Source of the DNA: Eukaryota sp. TZLM1-RC
Taxonomy: Eukaryota > Protista > Metamonada: BaSk clade
NCBI GenBank assembly: GCA_040285825.1
Contig: JAUPSS010000004.1
Location: 4,245,784-4,309,783, forward strand
Length of the DNA: 64,000 nucleotides
Direction of reading: 5' to 3'
Both the position numbers and the translations under genes were made by a program. The notes beneath the pieces are model-generated. The model was not told the origin of the DNA and made no database searches. It saw only the letters and a list, made by a program, of their open reading frames with translations. Positions within the stretch are counted from its first letter, which is position 1; every line of letters starts with the position of its first letter. Shown piece after piece: positions 5,086 to 48,122 of the stretch.

Positions 5086-5202
5086 TGAACATCATTGACA
5101 ATTTTGATGCTGAAATCACTCAAAAATCCCCAATTTCATCCCAGTCCTTCAACATTGGTATACAGGACATTTATTCCATTGTTATAGACATTATCTGTCA
5201 GA

Positions 5203-11858: not shown

Positions 11859-11914
11859 GAGTGAAAGTGAAATGGACAATCTTTTTTTTAGAAAACAGGA
11901 ATATTTATGTCTTT

Positions 11915-13295
11915 GTATTTATTGAATTCACACACTTAATTCAATTAACTCAATACTAATGGGACGACTATCATTGAACCAAGATTTCCTCTACAAAATC
12001 TTGATCTGCTTGCTGTCTAGCTAAAGCTTCTCTTATTCGATTGAAAAACCGTGGTAATCTATTAATAATGGCAAATTGAATCCGTGAACGCCATAAAAAT
12101 ATATCAAATCTTTTCATTGTTTTTTCTTGCACCATTTTTTGGAAGTCATTCAAAAAAGTTTCTGATTCAACTGATAATCTTCCATTTATCGAAAATGGGA
12201 AAGCAATAAAAACCAGCTGTGTATTTCTAGCGACATTAGCCTCTTCAATATCTTTATCATATTTTCTATGTTTCTCTTTTGCTTTAAACTCCAGAGCAGC
12301 CACAGTATTAAGTTTTCTTCTGTGAACCAAAGTATCATTTGCAACATTACATGAGACAAAGTCAACAATAGCTTCAGAACTATCAATCCAATCACAGTAT
12401 ACATCACCTCTATCATCAGAACCAAAATTATTCAGAGAAAGTGTTTCCTTCAGCAGGGGCTCTTTGATACACGATATCCTTGCAGTTTGTGCCATATTGA
12501 AAACAGTGTCTCTAACAGCATCATGTAATGAAGAACGATAAGTTATCAATTTAGAGCAATTCAGAGCATGGCGCAAAGTGAGTTGAGGTGAATTCGAACA
12601 AATACATTTTTCTTTTGATAATAATTGATTATGGGGATGTTCAAATATAATCTCATTTTTGTTACAAATGCTTCATTAGTGGCACACAATCCAAATCTTT
12701 GTGGTACAATAGTTACAAAAAGTGAAGAATCTGACGACTTGTTTTCACAAACACCCTTTTCCAATAACAATGAGTGAAGATCTTGATTTAAAACAGCCAA
12801 GCTGCATATATTATTATAAAGATCTTTTTCATACATTCCAGTCAATCGTTTCTGTAATGTTCGAAGAGTGTACTTCAAATTTAAAACATTTTTTTCTGGA
12901 TTATTGCCATTGAATGATTGAGGAAAACATCGACCCCATTTTTCTACATCAATTTTTGAAATTTCTTCATTTAATGCAAAAACGGTGGAACTTTGCGTTG
13001 TCATCAATAAATCTTCCCAATCTGCAAATCTTTCGGAAAACTCAAAGATTGCATTTCTGCATCCACCAACAAAAGCACAAGAAGTAAGAATAGAAGCCTT
13101 CGTCCACCCTAAACCGCCATAATGTGGACTAAGGTAAGCATGATCTGGAATTTGAAACATTTTACATCCCAGAAATTGAGACAGAACTTTTGCACGTAAC
13201 TCATTAAACTTCTGAGCCAAAGGTCTAGTGACGAGAGGATTTGTAGATCGAAATATATGATTAAAATTGGAACTAATACACAGTCTTTCAGAATA
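11915..13295 (-). mobile_element. 5'-truncated RLE non-LTR retrotransposon subfamily B
   Basis: GGLGW motif, HALNC..HDAVRD, RGDVYCDW RLE motif, 3' UTR. Confidence 0.88.
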
Positions 13296-16680: not shown

Positions 16681-17339
16681 TGCTTTATTATCATAAACGA
16701 TATCTGTCAGAAGGACTAGGTCTTTTAACAGTCACAGAAACTTTAGTTCATCGACAGGCCTTTCAACTGAAGAAGTTCAGCACTATAATTAACCCTTCAC
16801 TCAATTTGATGGTTTTATCACAAGATCAGAAGTCAAAGCAGTAGTTGAAGCTTCTGCCATTAACATTCTGGAAGAACATATCATAAAAATGTTTCAAATC
16901 GTTGATACTGACTTTGACGGGCAAATAGAAAAGTATATGGATGTATGTGGAGATGTAGAGCATTTATAAAATATGTGTTGATGATCCTGAAATGGGAAGT
17001 TAATGTAGATGTGGTTTTCATTGTGAAGCTATCAATTGGAGATAATGGCATGAAAAGTATAAAAATAATATAAGTGATGAAATGAAATTCAAATGCGAAT
17101 AAGAGTAATAATAATAACCCAACCAAACTCCACTCACCAACTTTTGTACTATGTAGTTCTTTTTTGAAGAAACGAAAACATTCAAGATGTAACCTTGAGC
17201 GATATGTACTACTAATAAAAATTTGAAACTAACTTTACTTTGAATTGACAACTATGAGACTGATTGATTTCATCAAATTTTCAAAGTGAGGAACCAAGTT
17301 TTAATCATTTCTAACTGTTTCTTTTGTGTGTTGACTGTC

Positions 17340-19092
17340 ATGGATAACGCTCTACAAACCACCACTGTGGGAGCGTCGGTCAACCAGTTCTTCGACTCAG
17401 AGGAACGAAAAGCTAAGGAACGCCAGTTCTAAGTTCTTGCTAGTATTGGAGCCTCTGTTTCGACTTTGTTTGTGAAATAGAACCCAAACAAAAAACCATT
17501 CGAATACCATTCTCTGCTTTTCCAAGCGTTGGAACATCTCGTTCAGCACTTTTGGCCTCGAAGCCCACTGAATGAAACCACGTCAGCCGACGGTGGTAGA
17601 TTCTGGTGCAATTCTGGTCTACTTAACAGTCGAGAATTCAACTGAGGTAAGCTATCTGCCAGCTGTTGGCTGACTCCCCTGTTGTTTGGAAACACAATTT
17701 TTTCAAGAGCTGTGCCTTGTGTCTCAATTGCCCAAGTCCCAAAATGTACGTTAAGTGTGTACTTCAAGTTCTTTAGCCGGACGTCACCATTTTACAATAA
17801 TATCAAGAAATGCACCAACATATGTCTTGACCCACTGGATAAATGACAGCTATTGCCTTTATTGATTGGAGTCAATATGTTGGAAACATCAATCAGAAAT
17901 GACCGGTTTACCATCAGTATAAAAACTGCAGCAACAATCTTTCAGTCAGAACTGAATATTTTATCTTTTCTAGAAGATAACTGCCCTGAGGTTATGAAAA
18001 GACACTCTCTCACGCCTTTGTCCAATTGTTCAACATGCTTCTGCAATTTGAATAAAGAGCTGAATCTATTTTCACAAAGCTGAATGAAACCAAAGAGCTT
18101 CTGAACAACCTTTATCGGTTTTTTGATAAATCTAAATTTTACTAATTATACCATTTTTTTCACTGGTGATTCTTTGCGGTTGATGTTCACACAGAAGGCG
18201 AGGAAGACATTCAGTCGCCCAACTAAAACGGAATTTGAGTCGAGACGTGTCTCTCGAAACTATGATTTTCATAACTTTGAAAGGAAAAGAAAGTATAATG
18301 CCCATACAAAAACTAATCCACAGCAAAGACCACGGTTATCAGTGAATGAACACCCCAATTATCGAGATCCTGAAGAAAATTTGTTTTTTGTAGATATTGA
18401 TCCTAACCACAGCAATTTTTAACTTTTGTGGTTGGACATCTGGTTCTTTCCAAAATGTTGCACCTGTGGTTTAAAGTTCTGGCTTGCTGCTGAACCCAAC
18501 AGAACGAAAATCAAATGACCCTACTCTCACTCAAGCAACTCCTAATACTTATTCCATTTAGAGATTCCAAGAGTATCTGATTGAAATAAGTTTACTTTAC
18601 GTTCCTGAATCAGAGAAAGAGCCTGAATATTCTTCAATTATGAGTCGAAACCTGCAGCGTGGTACAAGAAAAAAAAATTAGAAGAAATAAGTTTGATTTT
18701 TTCATACGAAGACAAAAGAGACTAACTTGTTTTATTAAGAAAATTAAACGCTTGTCTGAAGGAAAAAACACTATAGTTTGGTTCGGCAATGGCGGTGGTG
18801 GTCCATCTCGTCAAGCTGTGAAATCCCTCAGAAAGAACTTTCTCAAACAAATCCAAATGCACTTTGAAAACGTCAAAGTGGGAAACGAGTTTATGACCTC
18901 AGTAAAAGTGAATTGCTGTAAGATCTTCCATAGAAAGATATAACATGATGACGGAAGGGTAAATAAGGCTAAGTTCGATTGCCCTCGATGTCAGACCAAC
19001 TGGTCTTGGGACATCTCAGCCTCCAGAAATCAACTGGAGATTGCAACTAGTCAGTACTTTACCGGTACTAGGCCAGAATCATTCCGAAGACC
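17340..19092 (+). pseudogene. Fanzor1-like RNA-guided nuclease pseudogene, copy 1 (C-terminal/omegaRNA deletion)
   Basis: Fragments KRHSLTP..CNLN, TIFFTGDSLRLMF, FVDIDPNH (RuvC-I), RRNKFDFFIRRQK, IVWFGNG, NEFMTS (RuvC-II), CC..CPRC, WDISASRN (RuvC-III), RPESFRRP. Stops and frameshifts present; start codon tentative. Confidence 0.82.
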
Positions 19093-19118
19093 GAGAAGTT
19101 TACATCAGTGTTGCCAAA

Positions 19119-19788
19119 AAATTAAAAACATTTAACTTTTCAACTTGAGTCATTTACCAGTGGAATATCAAGAAGTTGATGCTGAATTCAGGCAACTGAA
19201 TAGAATGATTCAATAAGTGAATACAATCAGTCAACCAACCAATGTACAAGCTGAAATGCAACAAACAGTTAGAAAAAATGGATTGTTCGATAAAGTCGCT
19301 GCCAAGATGTCCAATGTAACCAATCTCCATGTAGAAAATGAACTGAAATTTTATCTCAAGGAAGGTACTGTTGATTATGAAACTGATCCCTATCTGTGGT
19401 GGAAGGAGAATGTGAAGAAGTATCCAAGCTTAGCTAAGATTGTAAAAGATTATCTTGTTGTACAACCCAGTTCCGCATCAAGCGAGCGCCTTTTTTCAGC
19501 CGCTAGTCAAATAATCAGCAAAAAGAGAACCCGTTTAAACGAAGATACTGCAAGATGCTTGTTATGTTTGAGGTCATGGTATAAAAAGCAACAGTTTATG
19601 GATTGCAGACACGTGAGTAGATTTTAGTTTTTGGTTTGATTAGTTTGAAATAAAGTATGATTTTTATTTGAAATAACATGATATTTGAACAGAACAATGT
19701 CTATGATGATGTTAAACGGGATTTGAGTCAATGGACTAAAGAATGAGTCGAGTTGATTTAACTTAACTAGACTCAAATCGAAATCCTA
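19119..19788 (+). mobile_element. hAT transposon 3' fragment (C-terminal dimerisation domain plus putative right terminus)
   Basis: ELKFYL..DPYLWWK..YPSLAKI..PSSASSERLFS..KRTRL..LRSW; ends ...CGAAATCCTA with GAGTC/GACTC subterminal motifs. Confidence 0.85.
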
Positions 19789-19851
19789 ATTGTTGGCGAT
19801 AGTTATTCGATATCCTTTTGGTTTTTTAATAATATTCATTTATTAAAAAAC

Positions 19852-20710
19852 TTATAAATCAACATCTAAATAATTCATCTCACCCAAAACAGAACAACTA
19901 GATGCAACTCTTTCATAGTGAGATCCAAGAGAAAGCAAAGCATCAGAAACCATCTTCAACATCCCCTTAAAAATAGAAAGCACGATTCTATTTTGCCAAA
20001 ACAAACTGTTCAAATTTACGTTAGTTCTTCCCTTTACAATCATTTCAAAATCTGCCAAGAAATGTAAAGTCGTGGGAGCAAGTGAACCAACAAAAGAAAA
20101 ATACAAATGGATACAAATTGTATTTTGCATGCTATTGGGTGGACAATTTAAACAAAGGTTCACTGTATTTTTTGATTTTGAAATTTTCAGCATTTGAAAA
20201 AGGATTATGAATCTCAGAATTAGCAAGCCTTTCATTTGAGACATTACAAAGATCAACAGACATTACATCCACTAAAATGAAGGCTCCATCTAGTCCAGGT
20301 AATATTACATCACCTCTATTTTTCTTATGAAAATCACCTTCAGCATCAAACAGATTTGACAACAGAGGTTCCAAGAAGGATTCAATTCTATGAAACTTCA
20401 CATACAATATAATTGGTCTCTTACAGCATCGTGAATCTTGCTTCTAAAAGTAATAAAATGTTTACAATTTAACAAATGAGTATTTGTAATTTTTCGAGAA
20501 CATTTACAAATCAAATTATGAGGTAAATTATCAAGCCAGAAAAGGAACGAAAACTCATATTCAAAGTCCATGCAGAATCAGTTAAGAGAGTACCATAAAC
20601 TTGAATAATTGTTGTTACTAAGGCAGAAAACGTACTATCACACAGATCTTCTAAAAGATTGGCAAAAGCGGGATTCTTTTACTTGGCCAAGCCAAGTCTC
20701 ACATCAAAAT
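19852..20710 (-). mobile_element. 5'-truncated RLE non-LTR subfamily D
   Basis: HLLNC..HDAVRD, EPLL, RGDVILP..VDVMSVD, FWQNRIV. Confidence 0.85.
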
Positions 20711-21536
20711 CCAAAATGAAAAAAAATGATGCTTCAATCACTGAAGATGATTTCATACATTGATGATGTAGTATATGCAATTCAATAATTGTGAAAAAAG
20801 CAACTCTATTTTTGCAGAAATAAATTGGCTTCTGCCTGAACCTACTTAAATGTGTTGTACTTTCAAAGTTTGCAATTTCCACAATAGTTGGTTGAATTGA
20901 AATTAAACCCAAGTCCATCTCAGCTAGAGGTGACCTCCAAACCAAGCCTTTTTTCTATTCGTTGATTGTTTCGTTTTGGGTTTCACAGCTTTATCACAGA
21001 AGATAAATGGGGTACCAAAATCATCATCTCATTGACCATCCAAGATCCAAGTCTTCAATCAGTTTGGTCTCAATTTCATGAATTGCTCTATGGTTTACCC
21101 TATGGAGAACGCGTAATACCCAAAGTTATATCCATAGACATAAACGAAAGGAATGGATTGTCAATCAGTTATTGACCTAAAATGGTGCTGCAGAAGCTTG
21201 TGCTATAAAATGTTGACTTAGGTCCTTAACCAATTAGTACATTCTTACATCAAATGAGAAAATATTGAAGATGTCCAATGAATGAAAGAAACACACTTTT
21301 AAATCACCTACACAATTGGTTACACGTGTTTCTGTACCATTAGTGTAATCAAAGAGTAGTTGCAAATAAAGAACGTGACATATCTCCAATTATCACTCAG
21401 CAAACAGGCAACCGAAAAAAAATTGAACTTGAACAAATAACAGAATTTATCAACTTGTGAAAACAACAGAAAGGTTTCTCCATTTGGAACAATAAAAACC
21501 TCCAAATAACCAACAATGGAAATAAATATATACAAC

Positions 21537-24601: not shown

Positions 24602-25045
24602 TAAACCTTAAATTTTGGTGTGAAATCAGTATTTAGGTAGGAAGCAAATGCTTTCCTGAGAATGAACATACTTTGAGGTGCCTTATGTGAATTACCATTT
24701 CCATTCCCATTCCCATTCCCAGTTAATTCCCAAAATGTTTTTTACATCATCTCTTCTCATGACACGGACTTGTGAACTGTTACCGAAGTCTCCCATTCTT
24801 CTTCTTCCCTTGTTTATATTTTAGTGCTCAATTCCGCATCATTCAACTTCCCCCTACAGCAATAAACATAAATCAATACATTCAAAGAGTCTATGATTTA
24901 CTTCTTTACAACGTTAGGGATGTTGAACAAGGACAGAAACCTTGAGATACGAACAGAGTTTTGAAGAATAACTTTGCCATATTGAATATTGTTAAAAGAT
25001 GTACTACACATCTTTTTTTTATTTAAATTTTATTTTATTCTAAAC

Positions 25046-25160
25046 CTATAAATCAACATCTAAAAAATCCATCTCTCCCAAAACAAAAACACTAGATGCA
25101 ACTCTCTCATAGTGAGATCCAAGAGAAAGCAAAGCATCTGAAACCATCTTCAACATCCTA
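25046..25160 (-). mobile_element. Extreme 3' fragment of non-LTR subfamily D
   Basis: MLKMVSDALLSLGSHYERVAS..LDVDL followed by an A-rich tail. Confidence 0.8.
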
Positions 25161-26124
25161 CTACACATCTCGTTAAAATTTGAATAGATTAAATAAAAAA
25201 CATAAACTGTATTTGTTTTCAATATCATTACTCATTAATTCTATTGTGGAGCATAAAAGCGTCCTCAGCATTTAAACGACTGTCCAAATTTCGCCTCATC
25301 ACTGAAGCCAACATATCTCGCTGACTAGTGACACCAAAGATTGTGCCAAGAAAATGTGTTTGGTCGATAAATGATTAAGCAAGAATAGACTAGCTATACT
25401 GCGAAACATCTCCTTTGATCTCTTCTAATCTGGTGGAGCCAGATGTGGAAAATATTTGAAATACTCTCAATCTATTGGTCCTGAATCATGACTTCTGATC
25501 ATCATGATTACTATCATCAAATTGTAGACGACGTGAGGCAAAATAGACATCTTGCTCAAAACCTTCTTCAGCAAAAGATGGTGAAGAAAAGAAAGACGCA
25601 ACGTGAACATCAGGAAGGTCGGATAAAGTTCTTGCACCAAGAATCTGGGTAAAAGAAGACATTGAAAAAAAACGGGAATGAGATGGGAATAGGATAGGAA
25701 ATGCATATGAAATGGTTTTCACAGTATGTTTTTTTAAATATTTATTTATCAGATATATAGTGTTGATGATCCTGAAATGGGAAGTTAATGTAGATGAGGA
25801 TTTCATTGTGAAGCTATCAATTGGAGATAATGGCATGAAAAGTATAAAAATAATATAAGTGATGAAATGAAATTCAAATGCGAATAAGAGTAATAATAGT
25901 AACCCAACCAAACTCCACTCACCAACTTTTGTACTATGTAGTTCTTTTTTGAAGAAACGAAAACATTCAAGATGTAACCTTGAGCGATATGTACTACTAA
26001 TAAAAATTTGAAACTAACTTTACTTTGAATTGACAACTATGAGACTGATTGATTTCATCAAATTTCCAAAGTGAGGAACCAAGTTTTAATCATTTCTAAC
26101 TGTTTCCCTTGTGTGTTGACTGTC

Positions 26125-27912
26125 ATGGATAACGCTCTACAAACCACCACTGTGTGAGCGTCGGTCAACCAGTTCTTCGACTCAGAGGAACGAAAAGCTA
26201 AGGAACGCCAGTTCTAAGTTCTTGCTAGTATTGGAGCCTCTGTTTCGACTTTGTTTGTGAAAGAGAACCCAAACAAAAAAACCATTCGAATACCATTCTC
26301 TGCTTTTCCAAGCGTTCGAACATCTCGTTCAGCACTTTTGGCCTCGACGCCCACTGAATGAAACCACGTCAGCCGACGGTGGTAGATTCTGGTGCAATTC
26401 TAGTCTACTTAACAGTCGAGAATTCAACTGAGGTAAGCTTTCTGCCAGCTGTTGGCTGACTCCCCTGTTGTTTGGAAACACAATTTTTTCAAGAGCTGTG
26501 CCTTGTGTCTCAATTGCCCAAGTCCCAAAAAGTACGTTAAGTGTGTACTTCAAGTTCTTTAGCCGGACGTCACCATTTTACAATAATATCAGGAAATGCA
26601 CCAACATATGTCTTGACCCACTGGATAAATATGACAGCTATTGCCTATATTGGTTGGAGTCAATATGTTGGAAACATCAATCAGAAATGACCGGTTTACC
26701 ATCAGTATAAAATCTGCAGCAACAATCTTTTAGTCAGAACTGAATATTTTATCTTTTCTAGAAAATAACTGCCCTGAGGTTATGAAAAGACACTCTCTCA
26801 CGCCTTTGTCCAATTGTTCAACATGCTTCTGCAATTTGGATAAAGAGCTGAATCTATTTTCACAAAGCTAAATGAAACCAAAGAGCTCTTGAACAACCTT
26901 TATTGGTTTTTTGATAAATCTAAATTTTATTAATTATACCATTTTTTCCACTGGTGATTCTTTGCGGTTGATGTTCACACATAAGGCGAGGAAGACATTC
27001 AGTCGCCCAACTAAAACGGAATTTGAGTCGAGACGTGTCTCTCGAAACTATGATTTTCATAACTCTGAAAGGAAAAAAAAGTATAATGCCCATACAAAAA
27101 CTAATCCACAGCAAAGACCACGGTTATCAGTGAATGAACACCCCAATTATCGAGATCCTGAAGAAAATTTCTTTTTTGTAGATATTGATCCCAGCCACAG
27201 CAATTTTCAACTTTTGTGGTTAGACATCTGGTTCTTTCCGAAATGTTGCACCTGTGGTTGAGGATTCTGGCTTGCTGCTGAACCCAATAGAACGAACATC
27301 AAATGACCCTACTCTCACTCAAGCAAATCCTAATACTTATTCCGTTTAGAGATTCCAAGAGTATCTGATTGAAATAAGTTTACTTTATGTTTCTGAATCA
27401 GAGAAGGAGCCTGAATATTCTTCAATTAAGAGTCCAAATCTGCAGCGTGGTGCAAGAAAAAAAACTTAGAAGAAATAAGTTTGATTTTTTCATACGAAGA
27501 CAAAAGAGAACAGCTAGTTTTATTAACAAAATAAAGGCTTGTCTGAAGGAAAAAACACTATAGTTTGGTTCGGCAATGGCGGCGGTGGTTCATCTCGTCA
27601 AGCTGTGAAATCCCCCAGAAAGAACTTCTCAAACAAATCCAAATGCACTTTGAAAACGTCAAAGTGGGGAACGAGTTTATGACCTCAGTAAAAGTGAATT
27701 GCTGTAAGGTCTTCCATAGAAAGATATAACATGATGACGGAAGGGTAAATAAGGCTAAGTTCGATTGCCCTCGATGTCAGACCAACTGGTCTAGGGACAT
27801 CTCAGCCTCCAGAAATCAACTGGAGATTGCAATCAGTGAGTATTTTACTGGTACTAGGCCAGAATCATTCCGAAGACCAAGGCGTGTGAGACGTCCAAGG
27901 AGTCAGCAGTAG
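26125..27912 (+). pseudogene. Fanzor1-like RNA-guided nuclease pseudogene, copy 2 (most complete, about 595 codons)
   Basis: Same motif order as copy 1 with VDIDP, NEFMTS, CC/CPRC, RDISASRN; ends RPESFRRPRRVRRPRSQQ*. Multiple stops and frameshifts. Confidence 0.85.
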
Positions 27913-27994
27913 CTGTTTTCATCAACGTATTTTCAAGGTGTTTGGTGTGTACTAACCCTTGGTGCTGAGAAGTTTACATCAGTGTTGCCAACAG
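27870..27994 (+). ncRNA. Putative Fanzor omegaRNA scaffold (boundaries uncertain)
   Basis: Lies at or just after the Fanzor stop. Stems CAAGG/CCTTG enclosing TTGGT-GTGT-ACTAA (TTAGT in copy 3), and GCTGA/TCAGT; ends in TGTTGCCAACA. Confidence 0.5.
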
Positions 27995-28662
27995 ATTAAA
28001 AACATTTAACTTTTCAACTTAAGTCATTTACCAGTGGAATATCAAGAAGTTGATGCTGATTTCAGGCAACTGAATAGAATGATTCAATAAGTGACTACAA
28101 TCAGTCAACCAACCAATGTACAAGCTGAAATGCAACAAACAGTTAGAAAAAAGGGATTGTTCGATAAAGTCGCTGCCAAGATGTCCAATGTAACCAATCT
28201 CCATGTAGAAAATGAACTGAAATTTTATCTCAAAGAAGGTACTGTTGATTATGAAACTGATCCCTATCTGTGGTGGAAGGAGAATGTGAAGAAGTATCCA
28301 AGCTTAGCTAAGATTGCAAAAGATTATCTTGTTGTACAACCCAGTTCCGCTTCAAGCGAGCGCCTTTTTTCAGCCGCTAGTCAAATAATCAGCAAAAAGA
28401 GAGCCCGTTTAAACGAAGATACTGCAAGATGCTTGTTATGTTTGAGGTCATGGTATAAAAAGCAACAGTTTATGGATTGCAGACACGTGAGTAGATTTTA
28501 GTTTTTGGTTTGATTAGTTTGAAATAAAGTATGATTTTTATTTGAAATAACATGATATTTGAACAGAACAATGTCTATGATGATGTTGAACGGGATTTGA
28601 GTCAATGGACGTAAGAATGAGTCGAGTTGATTTAACTTAACTAGACTCAAATCGAAATCCTG
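27993..28662 (+). mobile_element. hAT transposon 3' fragment, copy 2
   Basis: hATC domain ORF 28091-28501; terminus ...GACTCAAATCGAAATCCTG. Confidence 0.85.
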
Positions 28663-28725
28663 AGTGTTGGCGATAGTTATTCAATATCCTTTTGGTTTTT
28701 TAATAATATTCATTTATTAAAAAAC

Positions 28726-29358
28726 TTATAAATCAACATCTAAATAATCCATCTCTCCCAAAACAACACAGCTAGATGTAACTCTCTCATAGTGAAATCC
28801 AAGAGAAAGCAAAGCATCAGAAACCGTCTTCAACATCCCCTTAAAAATAGAAAACACAATTGTATTTTGCCAAAACAAACTATTCAAATTTCTGTTAGTT
28901 CTTCTCTTTACAATCATTTCAAAATCTGTCAGAAAACGAATAGCCGTGGGAGCAAGTGAACCAACAAAAGAAAAATACAAATGGAGACAAATTGTATTTT
29001 GCATGCTGTCGGGTGGACAATTTAAACAAAGGTTCACTGTATTTCTTGATTTTGAAATTTTCAGCATTTGAAAGAAGATTATGAATTTCAGAATTAGCAA
29101 GCCTTTCATTTGAGAAATTACAAAGATCAACAGACATTACATCCACTAAAATGAAGGCTCCATCTAATCCAGGTAATATGACATCACCTCTATTATTCTT
29201 ATGAAAATCATCTTCAGTATCAAACAGATTTGACAACAGGGGTTCCAAAAAGGATTCAATTCTATGAGACTTCCACATACAATATAATTGGTGTCTTACA
29301 GCATCGTCAGCCTTGCTTCTAAAAGTAATAAAATGTTTACAATTTAACAAATGAGTAA
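28726..29358 (-). mobile_element. Non-LTR subfamily D 3' fragment
   Basis: ORFs 28726-29130 and 28919-29350; essentially identical to inverted 30281-30913. Confidence 0.85.
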
Positions 29359-29648
29359 GAACTTATCGTTCTTCATTACATGATGCTGTTAGAGACACTG
29401 TTTTCAATATGGCACAAACTGCAAGGATATCGTGTATCAAAGAGCCCCTGCTGAAGGAAACACTTTCTGTGAATAATTTTGGTTCTGATGATAGAGGTGA
29501 TGTATAACAATTCCTCAAATTTATAACACTCTCTTAACTGATTATGGATGGATTTTGAATATGAGATTTCGTTCCATTATCTGACCTAATGATTTACCTC
29601 ATAATTGAATTTGTAAATGTTCTCGAAAAATTACAATTACCCATTTGT

Positions 29649-30280
29649 CATATTTATTGATTTTGCACACTTAATTAAATTAACTCATAACTAATGGGAC
29701 GACTATCATTGAACCAAGATTTCCTCTACAAAATCTTGATCTGCTTGCTGTCTAGCTAAAGCTTCTCTTATTCGATTGAAAAACCGTGGTAATCTATTAA
29801 TAATGGCAAATTAAATCCGTGAACGCCATAAAAAAATATCAAATCTTTTCATTGTTTTTTCATGCACCACTTTTTGGAAGTCATCCAAAAAAGTTTCTGC
29901 TTCAACTGATAATCTTCCATTTATCGAAAATGGGAAAGCAATAAAAACCAGCTGTGTATTTCTATCGACATTAGCCTCTTCAAGATCTTCATCATATTTT
30001 CTATGTTTCTCTTTTGCTTTAAAATCCAGAGCAGCCACAGGATTAAGTTTTCTTCTGTGAACCAAAGTATCATTTGCAACATTACATGAGACAATGTCAA
30101 CAATAGCTTCAGAATTATCAATCCAATCACAGTATACATCACCTCTATCATCAGAACCAAAATTATTCACAGAAAGTGTTTCCTTCAGCAGGGGCTCTTT
30201 GATACACGATATCCTTGCAGTTTGTGCCATATTGAAAACAGTGTCTCTAACAGCATCATGTAATGAAGAACGATAAGTTC
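29649..30280 (-). mobile_element. 5'-truncated non-LTR subfamily B inserted into a + strand subfamily D copy (29507-29648 plus 30281-30913)
   Basis: Flanked by TTACCCATTTGT (29637-29648) and TTACTCATTTGT (30281-30292), a 12-bp TSD with one mismatch. The D reading continues THL|LNCKHF across it. Confidence 0.8.
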
Positions 30281-30976
30281 TTACTCATTTGTTAAATTGT
30301 AAACATTTTATTACTTTTAGAAGCAAGGCTGACGATGCTGTAAGACACCAATTATATTGTATGTGGAAGTCTCATAGAATTGAATCCTTTTTGGAACCCC
30401 TGTTGTCAAATCTGTTTGATACTGAAGATGATTTTCATAAGAATAATAGAGGTGATGTCATATTACCTGGATTAGATGGAGCCTTCATTTTAGTGGATGT
30501 AATGTCTGTTGATCTTTGTAATTTCTCAAATGAAAGGCTTGCTAATTCTGAAATTCATAATCTTCTTTCAAATGCTGAAAATTTCAAAATCAAGAAATAC
30601 AGTGAACCTTTGTTTAAATTGTCCACCCGACAGCATGCAAAATACAATTTGTCTCCATTTGTATTTTTCTTTGTTGGTTCACTTGCTCCCACGGCTATTC
30701 GTTTTCTGACAGATTTTGAAATGATTGTAAAGAGAAGAACTAACAGAAATTTGAATAGTTTGTTTTGGCAAAAATACAATTGTGTTTTCTATTTTTAAGG
30801 GGATGTTGAAGACGGTTTCTGATGCTTTGCTTTCTCTTGGATTTCACTATGAGAGAGTTACATCTAGCTGTGTTGTTTTGGGAGAGATGGATTATTTAGA
30901 TGTTGATTTATAAGTTTTTTAATAAATGAATATTATTAAAAAACCAAAAGGATATTGAATAACTATCGCCAACACT

Positions 30977-31646
30977 CAGGATTTCGATTTGAGTCTAGTT
31001 AAGTTAAATCAACTCGACTCATTCTTACGTCCATTGACTCAAATCCCGTTCAACATCATCATAGACATTGTTCTGTTCAAATATCATGTTATTTCAAATA
31101 AAAATCATACTTTATTTCAAACTAATCAAACCAAAAACTAAAATCTACTCACGTGTCTGCAATCCATAAACTGTTGCTTTCTATACCATGACCTCAAACA
31201 TAACAAGCATCTTGCAGTATCTTCGTTTAAACGGGCTCTCTTTTTGCTGATTATTTGACTAGCGGCTGAAAAAAGGCGCTCGCTTGAAGCGGAACTGGGT
31301 TGTACAACAAGATAATCTTTTGCAATCTTAGCTAAGCTTGGATACTTCTTCACATTCTCCTTCCACCACAGATAGGGATCAGTTTCATAATCAACAGTAC
31401 CTTCTTTGAGATAAAATTTCAGTTCATTTTCTACATGGAGATTGGTTACATTGGACATCTTGGCAGCGACTTTATCGAACAATCCCTTTTTTCTAACTGT
31501 TTGTTGCATTTCAGCTTGTACATTGGTTGGTTGACTGATTGTAGTCACTTATTGAATCATTCTATTCAGTTGCCTGAAATCAGCATCAACTTCTTGATAT
31601 TCCACTGGTAAATGACTTAAGTTGAAAAGTTAAATGTTTTTAATCT
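30977..31646 (-). mobile_element. hAT transposon 3' fragment, copy 3
   Basis: ORF 31138-31548 differs from copy 2 by one residue; CAGGATTTCG terminus at 30977. Confidence 0.85.
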
Positions 31647-31726
31647 GTTGGCAACACTGATGTAAACTTCTCAGCACCAAGGGTTAGTACACACTAAACA
31701 CCTTGAAAATACGTTGATGAAAACAG

Positions 31727-33415
31727 CTACTGCTGACTCCTTGGACGTCTCACACGCTTTGGTCTTCGGAATGATTCTGGCCTAGTACCAGTAAAATACT
31801 CACTGATTGCAATCTCCAGTTGATTTCTGGAGGCTGAGATGTCCCTAGACCAGTTGGTCTGACATCGAGGGCAATCGAACTTAGCCTTATTTACCCTTCC
31901 GTCATCATGTTATATCTTTCTATGGAAGACCTTACAGCAATTCACTTTTACTGAGGTCATAAACTCGTTCCCCACTTTGACGTTTTCAAAGTGCATTTGG
32001 ATTTGTTTGAGAAGTTCTTTCTGGGGAATTTCACAGCCTGACGAGATGGGCCACCGCCGCCATTGCCGAACCAAACTATAGTGTTTTTTCCTTCAGACAA
32101 GCGTTTAGTTTTGTTAATAAAACTAGTTAGTCTCTTTTGTCTTCGTATGAAAAAATCAAACTTATTTCTTCTAAGTTTTTTTTCTTGCACCACGCTGCAG
32201 ATTTCGACTCATAATTGAAGAATATTCAGGCTCTTTCTCTGATTCAAAAACATAAGGTAAACTTATTTCAATCAGATACTCTTGAAAGCTCTGAGCGGAA
32301 TAATTATTAGGATTTGCTTGAGTGAGAATAGGGTCATTTGATATTCGTTCTATTGGGTTCAGCAGCAAACCAGAACCCTCAACCACAACTACAACATTTC
32401 GGAAAGAACCAGATGTCCAACCACAAAAGTGAAAAATTGCTGTGGTTGGGATTAATATTTACAAAAAACAAACTTTCTTCAGGATCTCGAAAATTGGAGT
32501 GTTCATTCACTAATAACCGTGGTCTTTGCTGTGGATTAGTTTTTGTATGGACATTACACTTTCTTTTTCTTTCAGAGTTATGAAAATCATAGTTTCCAGA
32601 GACACGTCTCGACTCAAATTCCGTTTAAGTCAGCCGACTGAATGTTTTCCTCGCCTTCTTTGTGAACATCAACCGCAAAGAATCACCATTTGAAAAAATG
32701 GTATAGTTTATAAATTTAGATTTATCAAAAAACCGATAAAGGTTGTTCAGAAGCTCTTTGGTTTCATTCAGCTTTGTGAAAATAGATTCAGCTCTTTATC
32801 CAATTCGCAGAGGCATGTTGAACAATTGGACAAAGGCGTGAGAGAGTATCTTTTCATAACCTCAGGGCAGTTATCTTCTAGAAAAGATAAAATATTCAGT
32901 TCTGACTAAAAGATTGTTGCTGCAATCTCCATACTGATGGTAAACCAGCCATTTCTGATTGAGGTTTCCAATATATTGACTCCAACCAATATAGGCATTA
33001 GCTGTCATATTTATCCAGTGGGTCGACATATGCTGGTGCATTTCTTGATATTATTGTAAAATAATGACGTCCGGCTAAAGAACTTGAAGTACACACTTAA
33101 CGTACATTTTGGGACTTGGGCAATTGAGACACAAGGCACAGCTCTGGAAAAAATTGTGTTTCAAAACAACAGGGGAGTCAGCCAACAGCTGGCAGAAAGC
33201 TTACCTCAGTTGAATTCTCGACTGTCAAGTAGACTAGAATTGCACCAGAATCTACCACCGTCGGCTAACGTGGTTTCATTCAGTGGGCTCCGAGGCCAAA
33301 AGTGCAAAACGAAATGTTGCAGCGCTTGAAGAACGAGAGGATGGTTTGCGAATGGTCTTTTTTGTTTGGGTTCTCTTTCACAAATCAAGTCGAAACAGAG
33401 GCTCCAGAACTGGCA
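31727..33415 (-). pseudogene. Fanzor1-like pseudogene, copy 3 (RuvC-I D to N)
   Basis: Reverse complement of copy 2; RuvC-I reads VNINPNH; NEFMTS, CPRC and RDISASRN retained. Confidence 0.82.
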
Positions 33416-33689
33416 TTAAGTAAGCCACATAGACTGTTCTGGGTATTGGAGTACAAGAAGTCGCACTAGGTGAGTAGCATGAGCTCCAATACTAGTTTGG
33501 TTGTGTGGTTACCATTTCTCTTATTCACATTTGAAATTCATTTCGTCAATTCTTTTTTGCTGCTACCCCAAATTTCTCAACCATAAATCCCACCATCTCC
33601 GACTGATATTTTGTCAATATGAGCAAACATTGTTGCTCTCATTTCTGCTGTGCTCCGTTTTTCCACACAAACTATTTCTGATTAGAATG

Positions 33690-34915: not shown

Positions 34916-35848
34916 ATGAGTAACTTTGAATCAGAGTATGACCCCAAGCCACTACCAGATGAAGTACAACCCCTAGCGAAGTGGAACGTAGGCCTTCTCA
35001 CGTTTTTTGTTCTCATACAGTTCTTAGGTGGACTTGGGTTTGGAATTGCTGGTCTTTTAGCCGTTGCTCCTGGATTTTTGTTCCTATTTATCTTACGTAA
35101 CCCCATCAAGAAACATGTAAACCTCAACCGCTTCATCTACATCTTCTTCTCCATTCTACCTGGTATTATCATCGTAGTTTTCCAACAAATGGGAATGTCT
35201 GCATTCTTTGATTCGTTATATGATGAAGATGATATTAACTTTGGCATCCACAATCTCTTTTATTCTCTATTCACTGCATTTATGGTTGCTTCGTTCACCG
35301 AAGAAGTTTTAAAGTATTTCGTCATTCGTAGAATCGATCATACCCCAGAGTTTACAAGGACCAATATTATAGGAACCTCCTTGCTTGGTTTTGCTGGAGG
35401 TTTGGGTTTTGGAATCTTTGAAAACATTCTGTACCTTTCTTCTGCCTATGCTGATGGTGGTGTTCCTATGGCACTTCTCACTGGTGTCATGAGAGCCGCA
35501 TCTGCTGTTCCTTTCCACTCCGTTACTGGGGCAATAATGGGCCTGGGACTAGGTGTTAGGAAGCATCGATTAGGAGGGTTTGCTACAATGGGGAAAATCA
35601 TTGCCATTCCTTTTGTGTGTCATGGAATCTACAACTTCCTCTTGTTTATGATATTATCAATTGAGTATTGGTTTGGGGAAATTGCGGCTGGCATCTATGG
35701 ACTGTTTGCATTGGTTTTCAACATCACCCTTGTTGCCTTAATGTGTATATGGACAAAGAAAAAAGTATATGAATATAATGAAGTTTATGAACAAAAGAAG
35801 GGAATTTCGGGAAGAAGTTCTGCTTTTGAGCTCAATTCTTCTGTATAG
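34916..35848 (+). CDS. PrsW-family (M82) intramembrane protease
   Basis: FTEEVLKY, GFGIFENILY, R..AVPFH..TG and HGIYN motifs in a multi-TM 310-aa protein. Confidence 0.88.
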   Translation: MSNFESEYDPKPLPDEVQPLAKWNVGLLTFFVLIQFLGGLGFGIAGLLAVAPGFLFLFILRNPIKKHVNLNRFIYIFFSILPGIIIVVFQQMGMSAFFDSLYDEDDINFGIHNLFYSLFTAFMVASFTEEVLKYFVIRRIDHTPEFTRTNIIGTSLLGFAGGLGFGIFENILYLSSAYADGGVPMALLTGVMRAASAVPFHSVTGAIMGLGLGVRKHRLGGFATMGKIIAIPFVCHGIYNFLLFMILSIEYWFGEIAAGIYGLFALVFNITLVALMCIWTKKKVYEYNEVYEQKKGISGRSSAFELNSSV

Positions 35849-40010: not shown

Positions 40011-40089
40011 TGTTGGCGCCCTAAGGCTTATATAATATGAATAGAAAATAAATCAGACTCTTCTTTACTACAATAGACTTTAGGCAACA
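40011..40089 (+). repeat. 5' LTR of element 1 (79 bp)
   Basis: 5 differences from 48044-48122; contains TATATAA and AATAAA. Confidence 0.92.
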
Positions 40090-43000
40090 ATAATTATTGA
40101 CCATTTTAAAGTCAAAAGGTATACCTTAACTTCAGCACTTTACTAGCAAACATCCCCAGAAACCAAAAACCTTTACAGCATGTCAGACATCATTCAGCAA
40201 GATATCTCTGACCCTAATCCCCCAACTAACATGCAACAGGAACCAGCGACACATATACATAATAAAGAGGGTAACGAGGCAACGGACCCGGATCCCACCT
40301 CCCCCTCCCTAAAAGTGAAAGATGAAAGAGTGGACGAGGTCCCTCCATCTTCAGCAATGGAAGAGGTAACGAGAACGGACCCGGCTCCCTCTCCCCTCAG
40401 CAAAAAAGAAACAGATGAGGTTACGAGAACGGACCCGGCTCCCTCTCCCCTCCCAATTAGTGAACCCGTCTCAAAGGGAACGGATGGAAATTCCACCTTA
40501 GACACGTCTACCCCATTAGGAGAATATGAAGAAATTCAATCTCAACTGGATGAAATGGAGGGAGAAGACGACTCTTCCGAGGGGTTCTACAAGTTATTAA
40601 GAGAGGATGCGGAAGCTTACCTCGAACCAACAGATTTCTGTCTGTTCGAGCAGCTTCCTCCCCTATGGAGTTACATTCAAAAGAGGCAGAAACGTTGGTT
40701 TCCAGACCCTCGGTATGGCTGGGGATACCCAAAAGGTATTGGAAATTCCCCTCAACGAAAGGAATGAACTCATAAAGGCTCTTGATAAATTGAGCAGGGA
40801 GACATTCGGACGTATCGCAGAGCGACGTCCCAGAATGTCTGGAATGGACAAGAGAATCAATGAAATGATGTCTCTTCCCATCAAAGATAGATTGGATTGG
40901 AAAGCCACCTTCCTAGATCAACATGGCAGGAGAATCAGGTTTCTCTCCATCGAGCAGAGAAGTAGGACCGACTCGGAAGACATCCTACAATCCAAATTGC
41001 CTGCCTGGTTTGATCCCAACTTTGATACGGAAATCCATAATGACACGGAGCTGACAGAGGGTGCTCCCACATATTTTAGGAAATTATTGAGCAGGAGGAT
41101 AGTAGTGAACCGGACAAGCTTGAACCGGTAACACCTTGGTTCGATGCAGACGCTCTGAATAATATTCACACGGAACGATCAGCGGTATCTACGTATAGGA
41201 GCCTTTCTAACAACTACATCCAACAACATGGTAACTCGTTCACGAAACAACGAGATTTTAGACAATGGGTAACGGGAGATCCATCCACATCTCTTTACCT
41301 TCCCAAACTGCCTGTTGTAGCCGCTATAATTTCTGAAAAAAGCCAACCAATACAGGTCTGCTCTATTGACAGCATATCCGAACACGTTCCAACAGTGAAC
41401 GTCCCGGAACCTGTAACTAGACATGACGTTGCTCCTCAGGAAGAACCAACTTCCTCCCAACCTTTGGAAAGTGAAATCGGAGAAAACATAGAGTTGAACG
41501 GGCCAGTCGTTGGAGAAACGGCTCCTCCTCAACCCTCAGTAAGAGATTCTTCTTCCGACAGACCTATGCGTATTGAGGACCTACAATCCTCAAGAAGAGC
41601 TATTGACATGAGCATAGCTAGTAGCCTTCATAGACAGATTGATCCACGGTCTGAGGATATCGACTATAAAAGACTTCGATTATCCGCTGATGACCCTATC
41701 AACAAAATGTCTATCATAGCTTTTCTTTTGAAATATCAAACTTGGGATAAATACGGGCGAACGATAGCTAATAGAAGCTTTGAAGCCCCAGGTCAATCAG
41801 ACTGGACCAGAGCCTTTATGATAGCTACCCGGCTATTTGGAGAAGACCAAGCAGAAATAACCCAAGATAGGATTAAAGATCTCCCCAAACATATACGCGA
41901 CCAGATCTCCATGGATACAACACAGCCTTTGGTAAGGATTGACCCAGCTATAACAGATAAGCTCGGACCCCCAATCCACCATTATGATTTATTTAGGAGC
42001 ATGATGATGAGCACTTGCCCTACAGGAATATCCAGCATGATCGACCCTAGACTTCTATCTAGATGGCAGAGTCAAGGCTTGAACAGCCCTAATGAAGCCT
42101 AGAATAAACTGGAGAAAATCCACAATAGGCGTGAGGCTGACAACGAGTTTGGTTGTTATGTAGAAGATTATGGAGACGTCTTGAGAATGACCACCTACAT
42201 GACCGACCTAACCATCCCCGATTTAATTAGAGGAAGCAGTGGGCTGATAACCATATCTCCCGCTCTAATAGCCGAGTACTTCCTTATGGGTTTGGATAAC
42301 TTCGCTATATCAAGCGAACTCCTCCCAGTATGGACTAGGGAATCCTTGTGGGACTCACCGAACAGAACAACTCTACTCGATTTGATATCGACAACGAAAA
42401 GACATTTCCTCGTTTGGTTTTTCACAGCAGGAAATAAGCCCACAATGGATGTACTAAGGAATAGGGCTAACGAAGAAGAAATTTCTTTGGGATTCACGGC
42501 AATGAGAACTTACTCAAGAGGAGTAACACCATCAGCCCAGGCTCCAACAAAACGAGCAAGACGATCAGGTGGAAAGTCAAGAGGAACCCCTCAACACAAA
42601 TACATCCCTGAAAAGCATGAACGAGAAAGGTCAAAATTCTGTACATTCTGCAGTAACGTTGAAGGTAACAATCATGTTGGCCACACTGTATTCGAATGCA
42701 AGGAGCCTCGTTGTGCTAGAAGCAGAGTTCCCAAAGAAGAAAGATTTAGATTAGGAGATCAGGAGACGCCTGCTAGTAGAGGCAGTGTAGAAAGGGGCCG
42801 AGGTGGCCGTGGTAGACGTGTACATAGATTTAAATTTAGAGGCCGTGGAGGCCGGTTTAGAGGACATAAAGGAAGAGGTCAATATGGACCTATTTATAAC
42901 ATCAACACTACAGAGGATATATCATCAAACGCATCCCCTACTGAGTCAAAACCGACCCGTTCGAGTACGGTTCCTCACAGACGGATCAACAACAGCAACC

Positions 43001-45436
43001 GGAATAGCAGGACAGGCAACTTTCCTGATCGGGTACACATCAATGCAATCAATCACAAACAATCAACAACCGATTTAGCAAACCCGGTCAACAACTTTCC
43101 AACAGCTCAACAAAATCTCTCAATTCCTCTACAAATTCACCAAACCTGCTCTGATATCAACAGTATTTTTGATATTAATTCTACGTTTAGTGGAAACCAC
43201 ATCAGATACCAGCGTTCTCCATTTCTAAGACTGGAGATATCAATAAATGATATTAAAATGATTGCGACTATAGATGTGGCTGCGTTTTGTTCAGTTATTA
43301 CTGCAGATTTAACTGAACAATGCCATATGTCAATCAATAGCAAGGATACCATTAAGTTCTTACCAGCTGATAACGTATCCACAAAATCGCTAGGGATTGC
43401 AACTGGTATTCTGTCGTTCAATGTAGGAAGCATTGCGCAACAAGTTCATTATAAACATACTCTTCCCATAATCCCGGGTTCGAACAAATTATTAATAGGG
43501 ACAGACATGTTAAAAGCACTTGGGCTTCAGACGGATGATGGTTTTTTCATTAGATTAGACAAAGAACACCGCATTTTGCTAAATGCAGAATTAGAATTCG
43601 ACTCTAGGATCGCTCAACATTCGATTGGGACCTTAAATAACCATTCACCAAGTCCTTCTGATTTTGAGGAGCAATTAGCAAGATCTGGATGTGAGATAAA
43701 ATTAGATGATAGTAATAATAAATTAAAATTAACGAGTCTACTAGGAATTTTCAGCGATGTTTTTAGTGAAACTCCAAACAGAAAAGGAATCAATTGTAAT
43801 CCTCTAACAATCCCCTTTAGAGATGAGAATGCTATAGTACACAAGCCTGCTAGACGGTTAAATCCAGCAAAATGGAAATAGCAAACAAAATATTTGATGA
43901 ACTGATTGAAATGGGCTATGCAGTTGAATCAAATTATAAATTCAGCTCTCCTATTGTGTTAGTTATATATCCTGACGACAAGAAACCCAGGTTGACTGGA
44001 GACTTTAGCGGTAAAGATGGAGTTTATGCCCACACGATTTCAGTAGAGCCTAATCTACCTTGGATTAGAGATATTTTAGAATTTTTGAGTAGAGCAAACT
44101 ACATTGCCACGCTTGATTTACCAAAAGCTTTCTGGCAGATGAACGTAGCTGAGAAGGATATTGAGAAAACATCAATCTCAATCCCGGAAGGTCAATTATG
44201 TTTAAAAGAGTTTGCTTCGGATTAAACATCCCAGCAGTTTTTCGAAATGTAATGATGGAAAGATTCCAAATGATGGCGTTTTTATATATATCGATGATAT
44301 TATAATAGTTGGAACGACTTTCGATGAATTCTATAAGAGATTACAAAGAGTCCTCCAATGCGCCAGAAATAGACGTGTAAATATAGGTCTACGCAAATGT
44401 AAATTCGTAACATCCAAACACCCTATTGATATTTTAGGAAGCACCTTCCAGGATAAAACCAGATTTATTAGTAAGAAAAAAATCGAAGCCTTGATGAGAA
44501 TCCCTAGACCAAAATCAGTGAAAGAAGTTCGCTCATTGGTAGGATCCATCAATTATATTAGAGATTGGCGTCCAGGTATTTCCGAATTAATAGCTCCAAT
44601 TAACGAGTTAATTAAAGGAAAACCTAGAATAATAAAATGGACCAACGAGCATGACGATTATTTTAAACAAATAAAAGATTTAATAATTAATCACATGCCT
44701 CTGGAATTACCAGCTCCGGGCAAGCGAGTATTGATAAGTACTGACGCTTCAGATGTAGCAGTAGGAGGTGTAATTTGGCAAGAAATTGAACCCTACTCCC
44801 CTGCAGGAACCCCGCTAAATAAAAGGAAAGTGAAACCTTTGTCATTCTATAGTAGATTACTTACAGAAACACAAAGAAAATGGTCCACCCTACAAAAAGA
44901 ATTATATGGAATACTGTTGATTTTAACTGAAAGTTGTTTAGAAAGCTACTTGTTAACTAGACATTGAACAATTTTCACCGATCACAAAAACATTGCATTC
45001 CTGGCTACAGCCCCAGAGAAAAATAGAATTGTAAAGAGATGGCTGCCGATACTATCTGAATTCGACTTTGACATAGTCCATGAACCTGGTGAAGACAACC
45101 ATTGGGCAGATATGTTATCGAGGAATATTGATTTGGATCAAAACGAGGAAACTCCTTCTATTTGTAGTACAAATATACCAGATACTTTACTTTCAAATTA
45201 CGAGATATCTCCACTAGACGATGATTCTGATTCGGATCTTGAAGACATCCCATCAATCTCATCTCTAAGTAGACACCAAGACCTACCTATTTTTTCTTCT
45301 TGGTTCTCTAAGATAAGATCTGAACAACAAATAGCCAAAAACAACAACGACTCGTTATTTGAAAATGCAATTCTAGATGAAAATACTCAAATTTGGAAAA
45401 ATAATAAAAACAAAATTTTGATTCCAAAGAGCCTCA

Positions 45437-46570
45437 AATTTGTGAATCGTTTTCCTGAAAAAATTCATCTCATTGAAAATTGTGGCAGCTCTTATCTTAT
45501 TTCATTGCAACAGGAAATTGAAACTCTTTCACCCAATATTTGGGCTAAATGTTTCCCCTCTGATATTGTGGAACTTCCTTCAAGAAGCTTGCTCTCCTTA
45601 CCACTGACTTTTGCAAAATTGCAGAAAAAAATCTTGAAAGTTTTAGAAAACTTGGATTATATTGTACGTCTTAGCTTGGCTAAGGAAAAAAATCCCGTTT
45701 TTGCAAATTTTTTGATTGATCTTGAAGACAGTTGCTCAAGTTGCCTAATCTCCCAAATTCCCAACATTTATGGCCTCCTACTTAATGATCACCAATGGAA
45801 CACTGCAATGAGAATGAGATGTTTTCTATGGCCTTGTTCATTACCAAATGATTTAATTTGTCGCTGCAAGAGTGTTGTTACGCTTTCCCATATTTTAAAC
45901 TGTAAGAATTTCATAACTTATCGCTCACTTGTTCATGACTCAGTTTGTGATCAATTATATGCCATGTGCAAAAGTTTCAATATAGAGGCCTTTATTGAGC
46001 CACTAGTACGTAAGCTGTCTTCAGATCAAACTGATGATTCCTTTGGTAAAAGAAGGGCAGATTTAGTAGCTCCAGGGATCGATGGTGTTCTCAATGTTGT
46101 AGACGTTGTTTCAGTGGATGTTTGCAAAAATTCTGCTGCTCGTTTAGTGTATTCCGCTGATTCGCCGTTATCTAACGCCGAAAAAAAGAAGATAAAAAAG
46201 TATGAAAAACCTTTGGCACAGTTAGGTAGAGTGGAACATGTGAAATATCAGTTATGCCGTTTGCAATTTCTATTTTTGGCAATATTGGACCTTCAGGGTT
46301 GCACTTTTTTGAAAATTTCAAAAAAGTGTTACTGAATAGGTCTGGTAAAACAATGAACTCCACTTTCTGGTTAAATACAATTGTTTTATGCATTTTCAAG
46401 TCTATTCCAACAATGATTTCAAAGGCACTTTTAGCTATTGGTGTAGAATATGAACGTAATGCTGTGAGTAGGTTCAGTAATAGTGACGCTTGTTTGGAGG
46501 ATATTGAATTCTAGATGGGTTTTTTTATCTCAATAATTATTCCAGTTTTAAAAATAAATAAATTTTCAAA
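45437..46570 (+). mobile_element. 5'-truncated non-LTR subfamily C nested in the Gypsy pol
   Basis: TSD AAAGAGCCTCA at 45426-45436 and 46571-46581; short A tail; matches 13296-14398. Confidence 0.93.
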
Positions 46571-48043: not shown

Positions 48044-48122
48044 TGTTGGCGCCCTAAGGCTTATATGTTATGATGAGAAAATAAATCAGACTTTTCTTTA
48101 CTACAATAGACTTTAGGCAACA
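48044..48122 (+). repeat. 3' LTR of element 1 (79 bp)
   Basis: Preceded by PPT, followed by TSD TCCT; identical to inverted 51846-51924. Confidence 0.92.

Follow-up and report, generated by a model that had tools for sequence, protein, structure and literature searches.

Whether the broken reading frames at positions 26125–27912 of a 64,000-nucleotide stretch of protist DNA (hereafter the window) once encoded an RNA-guided nuclease of the Fanzor1 type, whether any relative of them is still intact, and how such an element spreads are the questions raised by this locus. The window belongs to the genome of Eukaryota sp. TZLM1-RC (GCA_040285825.1), the anaerobic, free-living metamonad Skoliomonas litria (PMC11603281), and holds compact host genes interspersed with LTR and non-LTR retrotransposon pieces. 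A sequence-only reading of the window had joined short fragments at three places into a single Fanzor1-like order of motifs, and all of the motifs that it listed were recovered by three-frame translation; no gene call covers any of the three copies.

Three broken copies in the window

Three related segments were delimited by self-BLAST of the window and alignment: 16962–20482, 25744–29506 and, on the minus strand, 30133–33415. Copy 2 (26125–27912, plus strand, ATG to stop) shows 83.8% nucleotide identity with P0031, an intact ORF of the same genome, and comprises 596 codons of DNA compared with the 621 amino acids of that relative. It is preceded by the 5′ non-coding region of the element (25848–26124, plus strand; 85% identity with a young family) and followed, directly after the stop codon, by the first part of a predicted omegaRNA scaffold tail (27913–27978, plus strand), which is cut off by a hAT element (27980–28671, plus strand) that lies nested in the scaffold and has lost internal sequence. 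This hAT element retains its left terminal repeat (27980–27993), a remnant of the right one (28665–28671) and a dimerisation domain (28091–28501, plus strand; Pfam E 1e-20). The scaffold tail resumes past it at 28672–28689 (plus strand), where 16 of 18 nucleotides match the young tail, and at the tail end lie antisense 3′ pieces of RT/RLE-type non-LTR retrotransposons (28690–29506, minus strand), within the duplicated segment.

Copy 1 (17340–19092, plus strand; 5′ homology from 17063) is 96% identical to copy 2. Through an 88-nt deletion it lacks its final codons and the greater part of the RNA tail, and the composite downstream of it (19093–20714, plus strand) consists of 12 nt from the end of the tail's first part, a hAT remnant (approximately 19106–19797), a tail remnant and an antisense non-LTR piece. 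Copy 3 (31727–33495, minus strand) has lost its first ~33 codons and carries an Asp-to-Asn change in RuvC-I; it keeps an 82-nt piece that is absent from copies 1 and 2, and a remnant of the 5′ non-coding region at 33494–33551 (minus strand). Its location had been given correctly before, but not its end, since homology extends beyond 33415, to 33495 in the coding part and to 33551 in the 5′ region. The composite downstream of copy 3 (30133–31726, minus strand), made up of tail to 31661, hAT remnant and non-LTR pieces, is 99–100% identical to the copy 2 arm of an inverted duplication.

State of the window copies

When the broken copies were translated with X at every break and compared with the intact ORF, each showed approximately 9–12 frame-breaking indels and 6–9 stops. 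Five frameshifts (codons 127, 207, 269, 389 and 471) and four stops (codons 132, 174, 182 and 561) are common to all three, and one of the shared frameshifts is a 7-nt insertion directly 3′ of the RuvC-I motif. The catalytic D/E/D residues are present in copies 1 and 2 and changed from D to N in copy 3, as had been read from the letters, and all of them lie downstream of frameshifts; in addition, the RuvC-I motif is DPN in copy 1, DPS in copy 2, with loss of the metal-binding Asn, and NPN in copy 3, W replaces R in RuvC-III of copy 1 (WSWDISASRN), and TGD stands at the WED motif position in copies 1 and 2. The label DPG given earlier to the RuvC-I motif was mistaken, the motif itself being present as DPN, as in SpuFz1. 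The first tail part of copy 2 folds no better than its shuffles (z +0.6), compared with a z of −5.9 for the intact S. litria tail.

The presence of the same breaks in all three copies would also be expected if they were small introns, recoding sites or assembly errors in functional genes, and small introns do occur in this genome, whose assembly is based on long reads. This explanation is scarcely conceivable, however: measured against the intact ORF, the breaks amount to 1–7-nt indels and point stops, which are not intron-sized; nonsynonymous differences outnumber synonymous ones (135–149 versus 98–102 codons); the scaffold is disrupted; and short-read contigs hold window-type sequence with 1–2 differences over ~200 nt, so that long-read artefacts alone do not account for the dead copies. 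An alternative genetic code and tiny introns were likewise rejected as causes of the breaks, on account of break sizes and of host ORFs that follow the standard code. The window copies make neither protein nor functional guide RNA, which upholds the earlier judgement that all three are dead; they are inert and of little interest in themselves.

Their kinship can still be read. In a phmmer search, one 99-aa piece matched a Skoliomonas protein with E 1e-43, and the window match is therefore not due to chance. Pfam searches with stop-free pieces returned a weak Cas12f1-like TNB match (E 0.002) in the last piece and the clear hAT dimerisation domain downstream, and a PDB sequence search with the same pieces returned only noise.

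Intact relatives in Skoliomonas

Ten proteins were found at E < 1e-10 with the 99-aa stop-free piece of copy 1, and relatives come from S. litria, Skoliomonas sp. TZLM3-RCL (RCL) and Skoliomonas sp. GEM-RC1. The nearest S. litria family is young, with 98–99% nucleotide identity among its copies and 81–84% to the window copies, and includes P0031 as an uninterrupted 621-aa ORF, which bears out the expectation that intact relatives exist elsewhere in the genome (P0031, P0047 and P0056 denote KAL0206842, KAL0221165 and KAL0211813, respectively). RCL has seven proteins of 592 aa and four of 604/605 aa, near-identical and with catalytic motifs kept, and the DNA of four RCL proteins is in each case a single ORF; GEM-RC1 has five near-identical proteins of 589/590 aa, again with catalytic motifs kept. 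In total, the clade comprises at least 8 subfamilies in three metamonad genomes, with several near-identical intact copies per subfamily. Within the word and length limits of the searches, two runs with clade profiles returned Skoliomonas proteins only, and no relative turned up in metagenome and viral contigs scanned with the clade alignment; the clade has been found so far only in Skoliomonas. The supposed invisibility to ORF callers thus applies to the window copies and does not extend to the intact ones, which are annotated by NCBI as hypothetical proteins with weak or no Pfam hits. It is these intact relatives that matter, more than the dead window copies.

Several observations concern the young copies themselves. 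The same 2-nt deletion in a CT repeat at codon ~251 breaks four of the five young copies compared (L004, L007, L008 and L009) and is masked in the gene models as an intron; spread in trans would explain it, as would a systematic error of the assembly. At L004 (1–9328), two young copies lie in inverted duplication, identical at 99.7% over 3.9 kb, and the breakpoint holds non-LTR sequence, a situation like that of window copies 2 and 3. Two Fanzor subfamilies of only 35% protein identity share a 5′ non-coding block of 360 nt that is 87–95% identical (L002 5581–5935, L003 5511–5864, also L010 and L011), a similarity at the nucleotide level that points to probable exchange of 5′ modules between subfamilies.

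RCL also contains a second, canonical-like Fanzor1 lineage (P0144). In this genome, multi-copy ORFs of 1560 and 977 aa combine an N-terminal 2A-like (StopGo) motif, an Ulp1/C48 protease and Fanzor1 (L003 54–4733, minus strand; P0144–P0156 with 23 cluster members, P0118/P0121 with 24 members), so that two separate Fanzor1 lineages bear a 2A-like/Ulp1 front end. At L003 8494–11840 (minus strand), a 2A-like motif lies ahead of a DNA_pol_B_exo1 gene and another Fanzor-like ORF, an arrangement that suggests a third, putative polyprotein-like Fanzor element.

Assignment to Fanzor1

The sequence-only reading had proposed structural and profile comparisons together with a resurrected protein. Because natural intact ORFs exist, resurrection is unnecessary, and the structural comparison was run on P0031 and the profile comparison with the clade profile. 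Two AlphaFold models of P0031 were of moderate confidence (pLDDT 70 and 75; TM 0.43–0.45). For both of them the top seven Foldseek matches were SpuFz, PpFz and GtFz structures (E 2e-11 to 2e-6 and 6e-13 to 1e-8), and a fold search independent of Foldseek ranked GtFz first. VIA comparison with Fanzor1 structures gave Z 16.8–18.9 over 457–504 residues at an rmsd of 8–9, the best Cas12 having Z 14.2 and the Fanzor2 ApmFz2 Z 10.6 (10.4–10.6 with the Foldseek-independent search included). HH-align aligned the clade over 521 columns to a canonical Fanzor1 profile, a member of which hits PpFz/SpuFz/GtFz at 1e-41 to 1e-25, with a probability of 98.5% and E 1.7e-15, and matched the WED TDG, IDPN, DExxTS, CxxC-RD and terminal RP motifs. 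Atlas feature hits were 0.98 to DUF8286+TNB clusters.

By residue counting in the alignment, D383, N385, E541 and D606 of SpuFz1 (PMC10432273) correspond to D383, N385, E543 and D584 of P0031. D383, E543 and D584, together with C552, C574 and C577, are invariant in nine clade members and form a predicted TnpB-like RuvC triad with a C-terminal zinc finger. Fanzor1 is defined by a RuvC-II glutamate approximately six residues before the zinc finger and a DPG or DPN RuvC-I (PMC13565253, PMC10530073), and the clade has both, as G(D/N)ExxTSxKxxCC, with the rearranged RuvC-II glutamate, and IDPN. A TDG motif in the WED domain and an enlarged REC (~600+ aa) separate Fanzor1 from Fanzor2 (PMC10711439); the intact members have TDG, TNG, SNG or SDG at this place. 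In their ~600-aa length, domain order, (T/S)(D/N)G WED motif, DPN RuvC-I (D383/N385 in SpuFz1), alternative RuvC-II glutamate just before the zinc finger, RD RuvC-III, terminal RP motif and structured 3′ tail with a terminal stem, they resemble SpuFz1 (8GKH/9CEx), PpFz1 (9CF0-3) and GtFz1 (9CER). They differ in that identity to these proteins is only 12–15% in structural alignments, the first pair of the zinc finger is CC whereas canonical Fanzor1 has CxxC, and nothing similar to the terminal inverted repeats of Spu-1 is found in the Skoliomonas elements. Fanzor2 and the IS607 TnpBs (ApmFz2, 9B0L) share the RuvC with alternative glutamate and the zinc finger, but the Skoliomonas proteins have Fanzor1-type length and WED motif and a far better fit to Fanzor1 (Z 17–19 versus 10.6), and a serine recombinase, as in IS607EU elements, is adjacent to no copy.

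By every sequence and fold feature tested, therefore, these putative nucleases are Fanzor1. The earlier proposal of a divergent lineage agrees with a long branch between the clade and canonical Fanzor1 in a quick, unrooted tree drawn without Fanzor2 or TnpB rows, which shows separation from canonical Fanzor1 and not the origin of the clade; phmmer and hmmsearch against PDB sequences, clade profile included, found no Fanzor. Among the matches listed in the literature search, a Fanzor from Skoliomonas or its group was not found.

History of the window copies

The five frameshifts and four stops common to all three copies imply descent from one dead copy, and the hAT remnant that splits the guide-RNA scaffold and the retrotransposon tail are shared as well. 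The three copies are thus duplicates of one already dead composite segment and not the products of three transposition events; three copies are present, as had been claimed, but they do not represent three insertions. The terminal stem of the scaffold is split in the window: homology ends at 27978, 692 nt of internally deleted hAT follow, and the tail is found again at 28672–28689, a match that none of 20000 random 18-mers equalled (0/20000). The true tail end has been replaced by the antisense non-LTR tail.

Since the same hAT fragment stands behind all three window copies, and since associations of hAT with Fanzor have been published (PMC10530073), the two could be regarded as a single composite transposon with hAT sequence as the guide. 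This is very improbable: the hAT is absent at that place in six of six young copies; its two terminal-repeat remnants do not enclose the Fanzor gene but both fall past the ORF, within the tail; the insertion disrupts the terminal stem; and the three window copies count as one event. The terminal-repeat remnants of the hAT itself, with the tail resuming behind them, identify the link as a nested insertion, and a role of hAT as carrier or guide is largely refuted by the young copies without hAT, the broken stem and the hAT's own ends.

The inverted duplication made up of copies 2 and 3 has 99–100% identity from ~27720 inward but only 91–95% over the 5′ portion of the gene, in which copy 2 resembles copy 1 more closely. 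These identities point to an older paralogue with recent conversion or duplication of the inner arms. In the same quick tree, the window copies group as sister to P0031/P0039 with 100% support. Very probably, then, the window copies are pseudogenes of a Skoliomonas-clade Fanzor1 with a history of death, hAT and non-LTR insertion and segment duplication. One copy of an older subfamily would have died and acquired a hAT within its omegaRNA scaffold and, behind this, a non-LTR tail, after which a ~3.5-kb segment would have been copied once directly and once in inverted orientation, with later homogenisation of the inner arms.

Junctions of the intact elements

The living element measures ~2.4–3 kb and consists of a variable 5′ region, one ORF of 590–640 aa (WED-REC-RuvC-zinc finger) and a structured tail of 70–115 nt. 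Its junctions were studied at six S. litria loci and at four loci of RCL that represent two more subfamilies, all chosen only for long ORFs. At all ten, the 3′ end is a fixed base 72–115 nt past the stop, in CAG or a one-base variant of it. The intact tail is predicted to fold as three stems, the last of which closes on the final base (folding z −2.4/−2.9 and −5.5/−6.2 in the two RCL families), and conservation stops at this base, where the predicted omegaRNA scaffold would give way to a variable guide. The 5′ ends are copy-specific, lying ~0.6 to >1.3 kb upstream of the ATG, and show captured DNA as well as internal deletions. Across the ten loci no terminal inverted repeats are evident, and neither a transposase among the called genes next to the ten intact or near-intact copies nor a common 5′ end was found.

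In five of the ten loci, the bases past the 3′ end recur at the 5′ side as target duplications of 6–14 nt: 13–14 nt at L008, 10–12 at L009, 13 at L003 and 11 at L011 (null p ≤ 0.0025 each), and 6–7 nt at L007, exactly at the 5′ boundary. None was found at L002, L004, L006, L010 or L012. The 4-mer before the left duplicate, picked post hoc, is C(T/G)TG in all three S. litria cases and TCTC in both RCL cases, and at L003 ten extra bases follow the left duplication. Similarity among the 3′ flanks of six copies, as expected for guide seeds, is borderline (p 0.03–0.06). At L012 (11984–11994), the flank directly past the element is a consensus CCAAT box, to which three other flanks are loosely alike, with the overall similarity being borderline.

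The elements lie close to host genes. At eight loci a same-strand host gene starts 0, 5, 7, 17–19, 45, 48, 69 or 85 nt past the element end, and at a ninth a frameshifted WD40 gene starts 27 nt past it, the local expectation for such proximity being ~0.02 per locus. Insertion 0–85 nt ahead of start codons may mean that leader or promoter DNA of core genes is replaced by the element. Among the matches listed in the literature search, no paper on start-codon docking was found. In the window, non-LTR pieces at 11880–11920 and 4849–5203 likewise precede host ORFs at short distance, with the first of them (~11.9 kb) in the same orientation.

A fixed 3′ end with variable duplications has precedent in Chlamydomonas CRe-1 and Mucor MCi-2. 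The available text on CRe-1/2/3 describes intact 3′ ends, frequent 5′ truncation, duplications of 7–19 bp preceded by a constant tetranucleotide and, occasionally, extra bases following the left duplication (PMC3627910), all of which resemble the Skoliomonas junctions. That text describes no preference of CRe-1/2/3 for host start codons, which is present in Skoliomonas, and matches CRe ends with those of Helitron2 elements of the same genome (PMC3627910), a link not found for the Skoliomonas elements. MCi-2 of Mucor circinelloides, as far as the same text describes it, is alike in its near-identical 3′ regions, exchangeable 5′ regions, 11–12-bp duplications, lack of terminal inverted repeats and unclassified mobility, and differs in its much greater length, a partial Crypton transposase in one subfamily and a fixed motif inside the duplication; the cause of the junction pattern of CRe-1/2/3 and MCi-2 is left open there (PMC3627910).

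Possible modes of spread

In Fanzor1, right-end RNA with the adjoining flank acts as the guide and the non-target strand is cut 14–17 nt from the TAM (PMC10432273); OMEGA nucleases act as homing endonucleases (PMC13565253). By analogy, the Skoliomonas tail would be the omegaRNA scaffold and the next ~15–20 host bases the guide, and cuts would fall at the 4-mer plus guide sequence. An empty site would read motif, then guide; after cutting by Fanzor, repair would copy the donor element from the right flank and 3′ end inward and stop early at a variable point, leaving motif, short duplication, truncated element and guide. Such copy-in with a variable stop would account for the fixed 3′ end, the ragged 5′ ends, the captured flank DNA and the 6–13-bp duplications directly behind the motif. 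As a mode of spread it is quite possible, though short of probable: no duplication was found at half of the ten loci, the 4-mers were chosen after the fact on three and two cases, and the local non-LTR elements likewise give 5′-truncated insertions with an 11-bp duplication. Its weak point is the colonisation of new sites, which needs similarity between donor and target guides, and that of the flanks is only borderline.

Textbook non-LTR retrotransposition leaves a fixed 3′ end, 5′ truncation and duplications of variable length. The Fanzor could accordingly be a non-autonomous retroelement, its transcript being copied from the structured 3′ end by a resident non-LTR reverse transcriptase into DNA nicked near gene starts, with Fanzor itself only helping to maintain the insertion. 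All three signs are seen here (duplications at 5 of 10 loci), non-LTR elements are very abundant, and within the window a 145-nt, 5′-truncated non-LTR tail with an A-rich end (25013–25158, minus strand) is flanked by an 11-bp target duplication. The frameshifted variant in four young copies is as expected for mobilisation in trans, and the clade member P0118 has an N-terminal 2A-like motif and an Ulp1 protease, which are modules of some non-LTR elements. The account nevertheless remains somewhat doubtful: Fanzor ends are a stem closing in CAG without an A-rich tail, whereas the non-LTR ends nearby are A-rich and show no relation to them; what is copied is the scaffold end, whereas the RNA should continue into the guide; upstream DNA of >1 kb, an old non-LTR tail included, is present in some copies; and the motif before the duplication differs among Fanzor families.

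Movement in trans as non-autonomous, one-ended transposons of the Helitron2/HUH type, as proposed for CRe-1/2/3, would fit the 5′ truncation, intact 3′ ends and duplications behind a tetranucleotide that those elements share in the text cited (PMC3627910), as well as the ten extra bases at L003 and the 3′ hairpins. It is distinctly improbable, given that no HUH or Helitron gene was seen in the window or among the called genes of 12 loci and that the 3′ ends of different families share only the short terminal CAG. Other routes of mobility have an equally slim chance.

A fuller form of the copy-in proposal, in which the element is self-propagating and transposase-free and the nuclease both chooses and opens sites (TAM plus guide seed near gene starts) for copying from the 3′ end, and the positions immediately ahead of start codons would be colonised again and again, must be called rather unlikely. 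If true, it would be a eukaryotic route of RNA-guided transposition and would also explain the junctions of CRe-1 and MCi-2. The clade offers natural, compact putative nucleases for which a scaffold boundary can be predicted and candidate TAMs taken from the insertion sites. It also makes testable whether the role of Fanzor goes beyond restoring excised transposons: the copies are young, their junctions sharp and the host culturable, so that a biochemical TAM, the cut position and the target duplications are directly comparable.

Other features of the window

Two related gypsy-like LTR elements in opposite orientation (40011–48122 and 51842–60045) have very short terminal repeats, and each holds a non-LTR fragment insertion. 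Among the host genes, those for a PrsW-family protease (34916–35848) and a sodium:dicarboxylate symporter (49458–50783) are both typical of prokaryotes.
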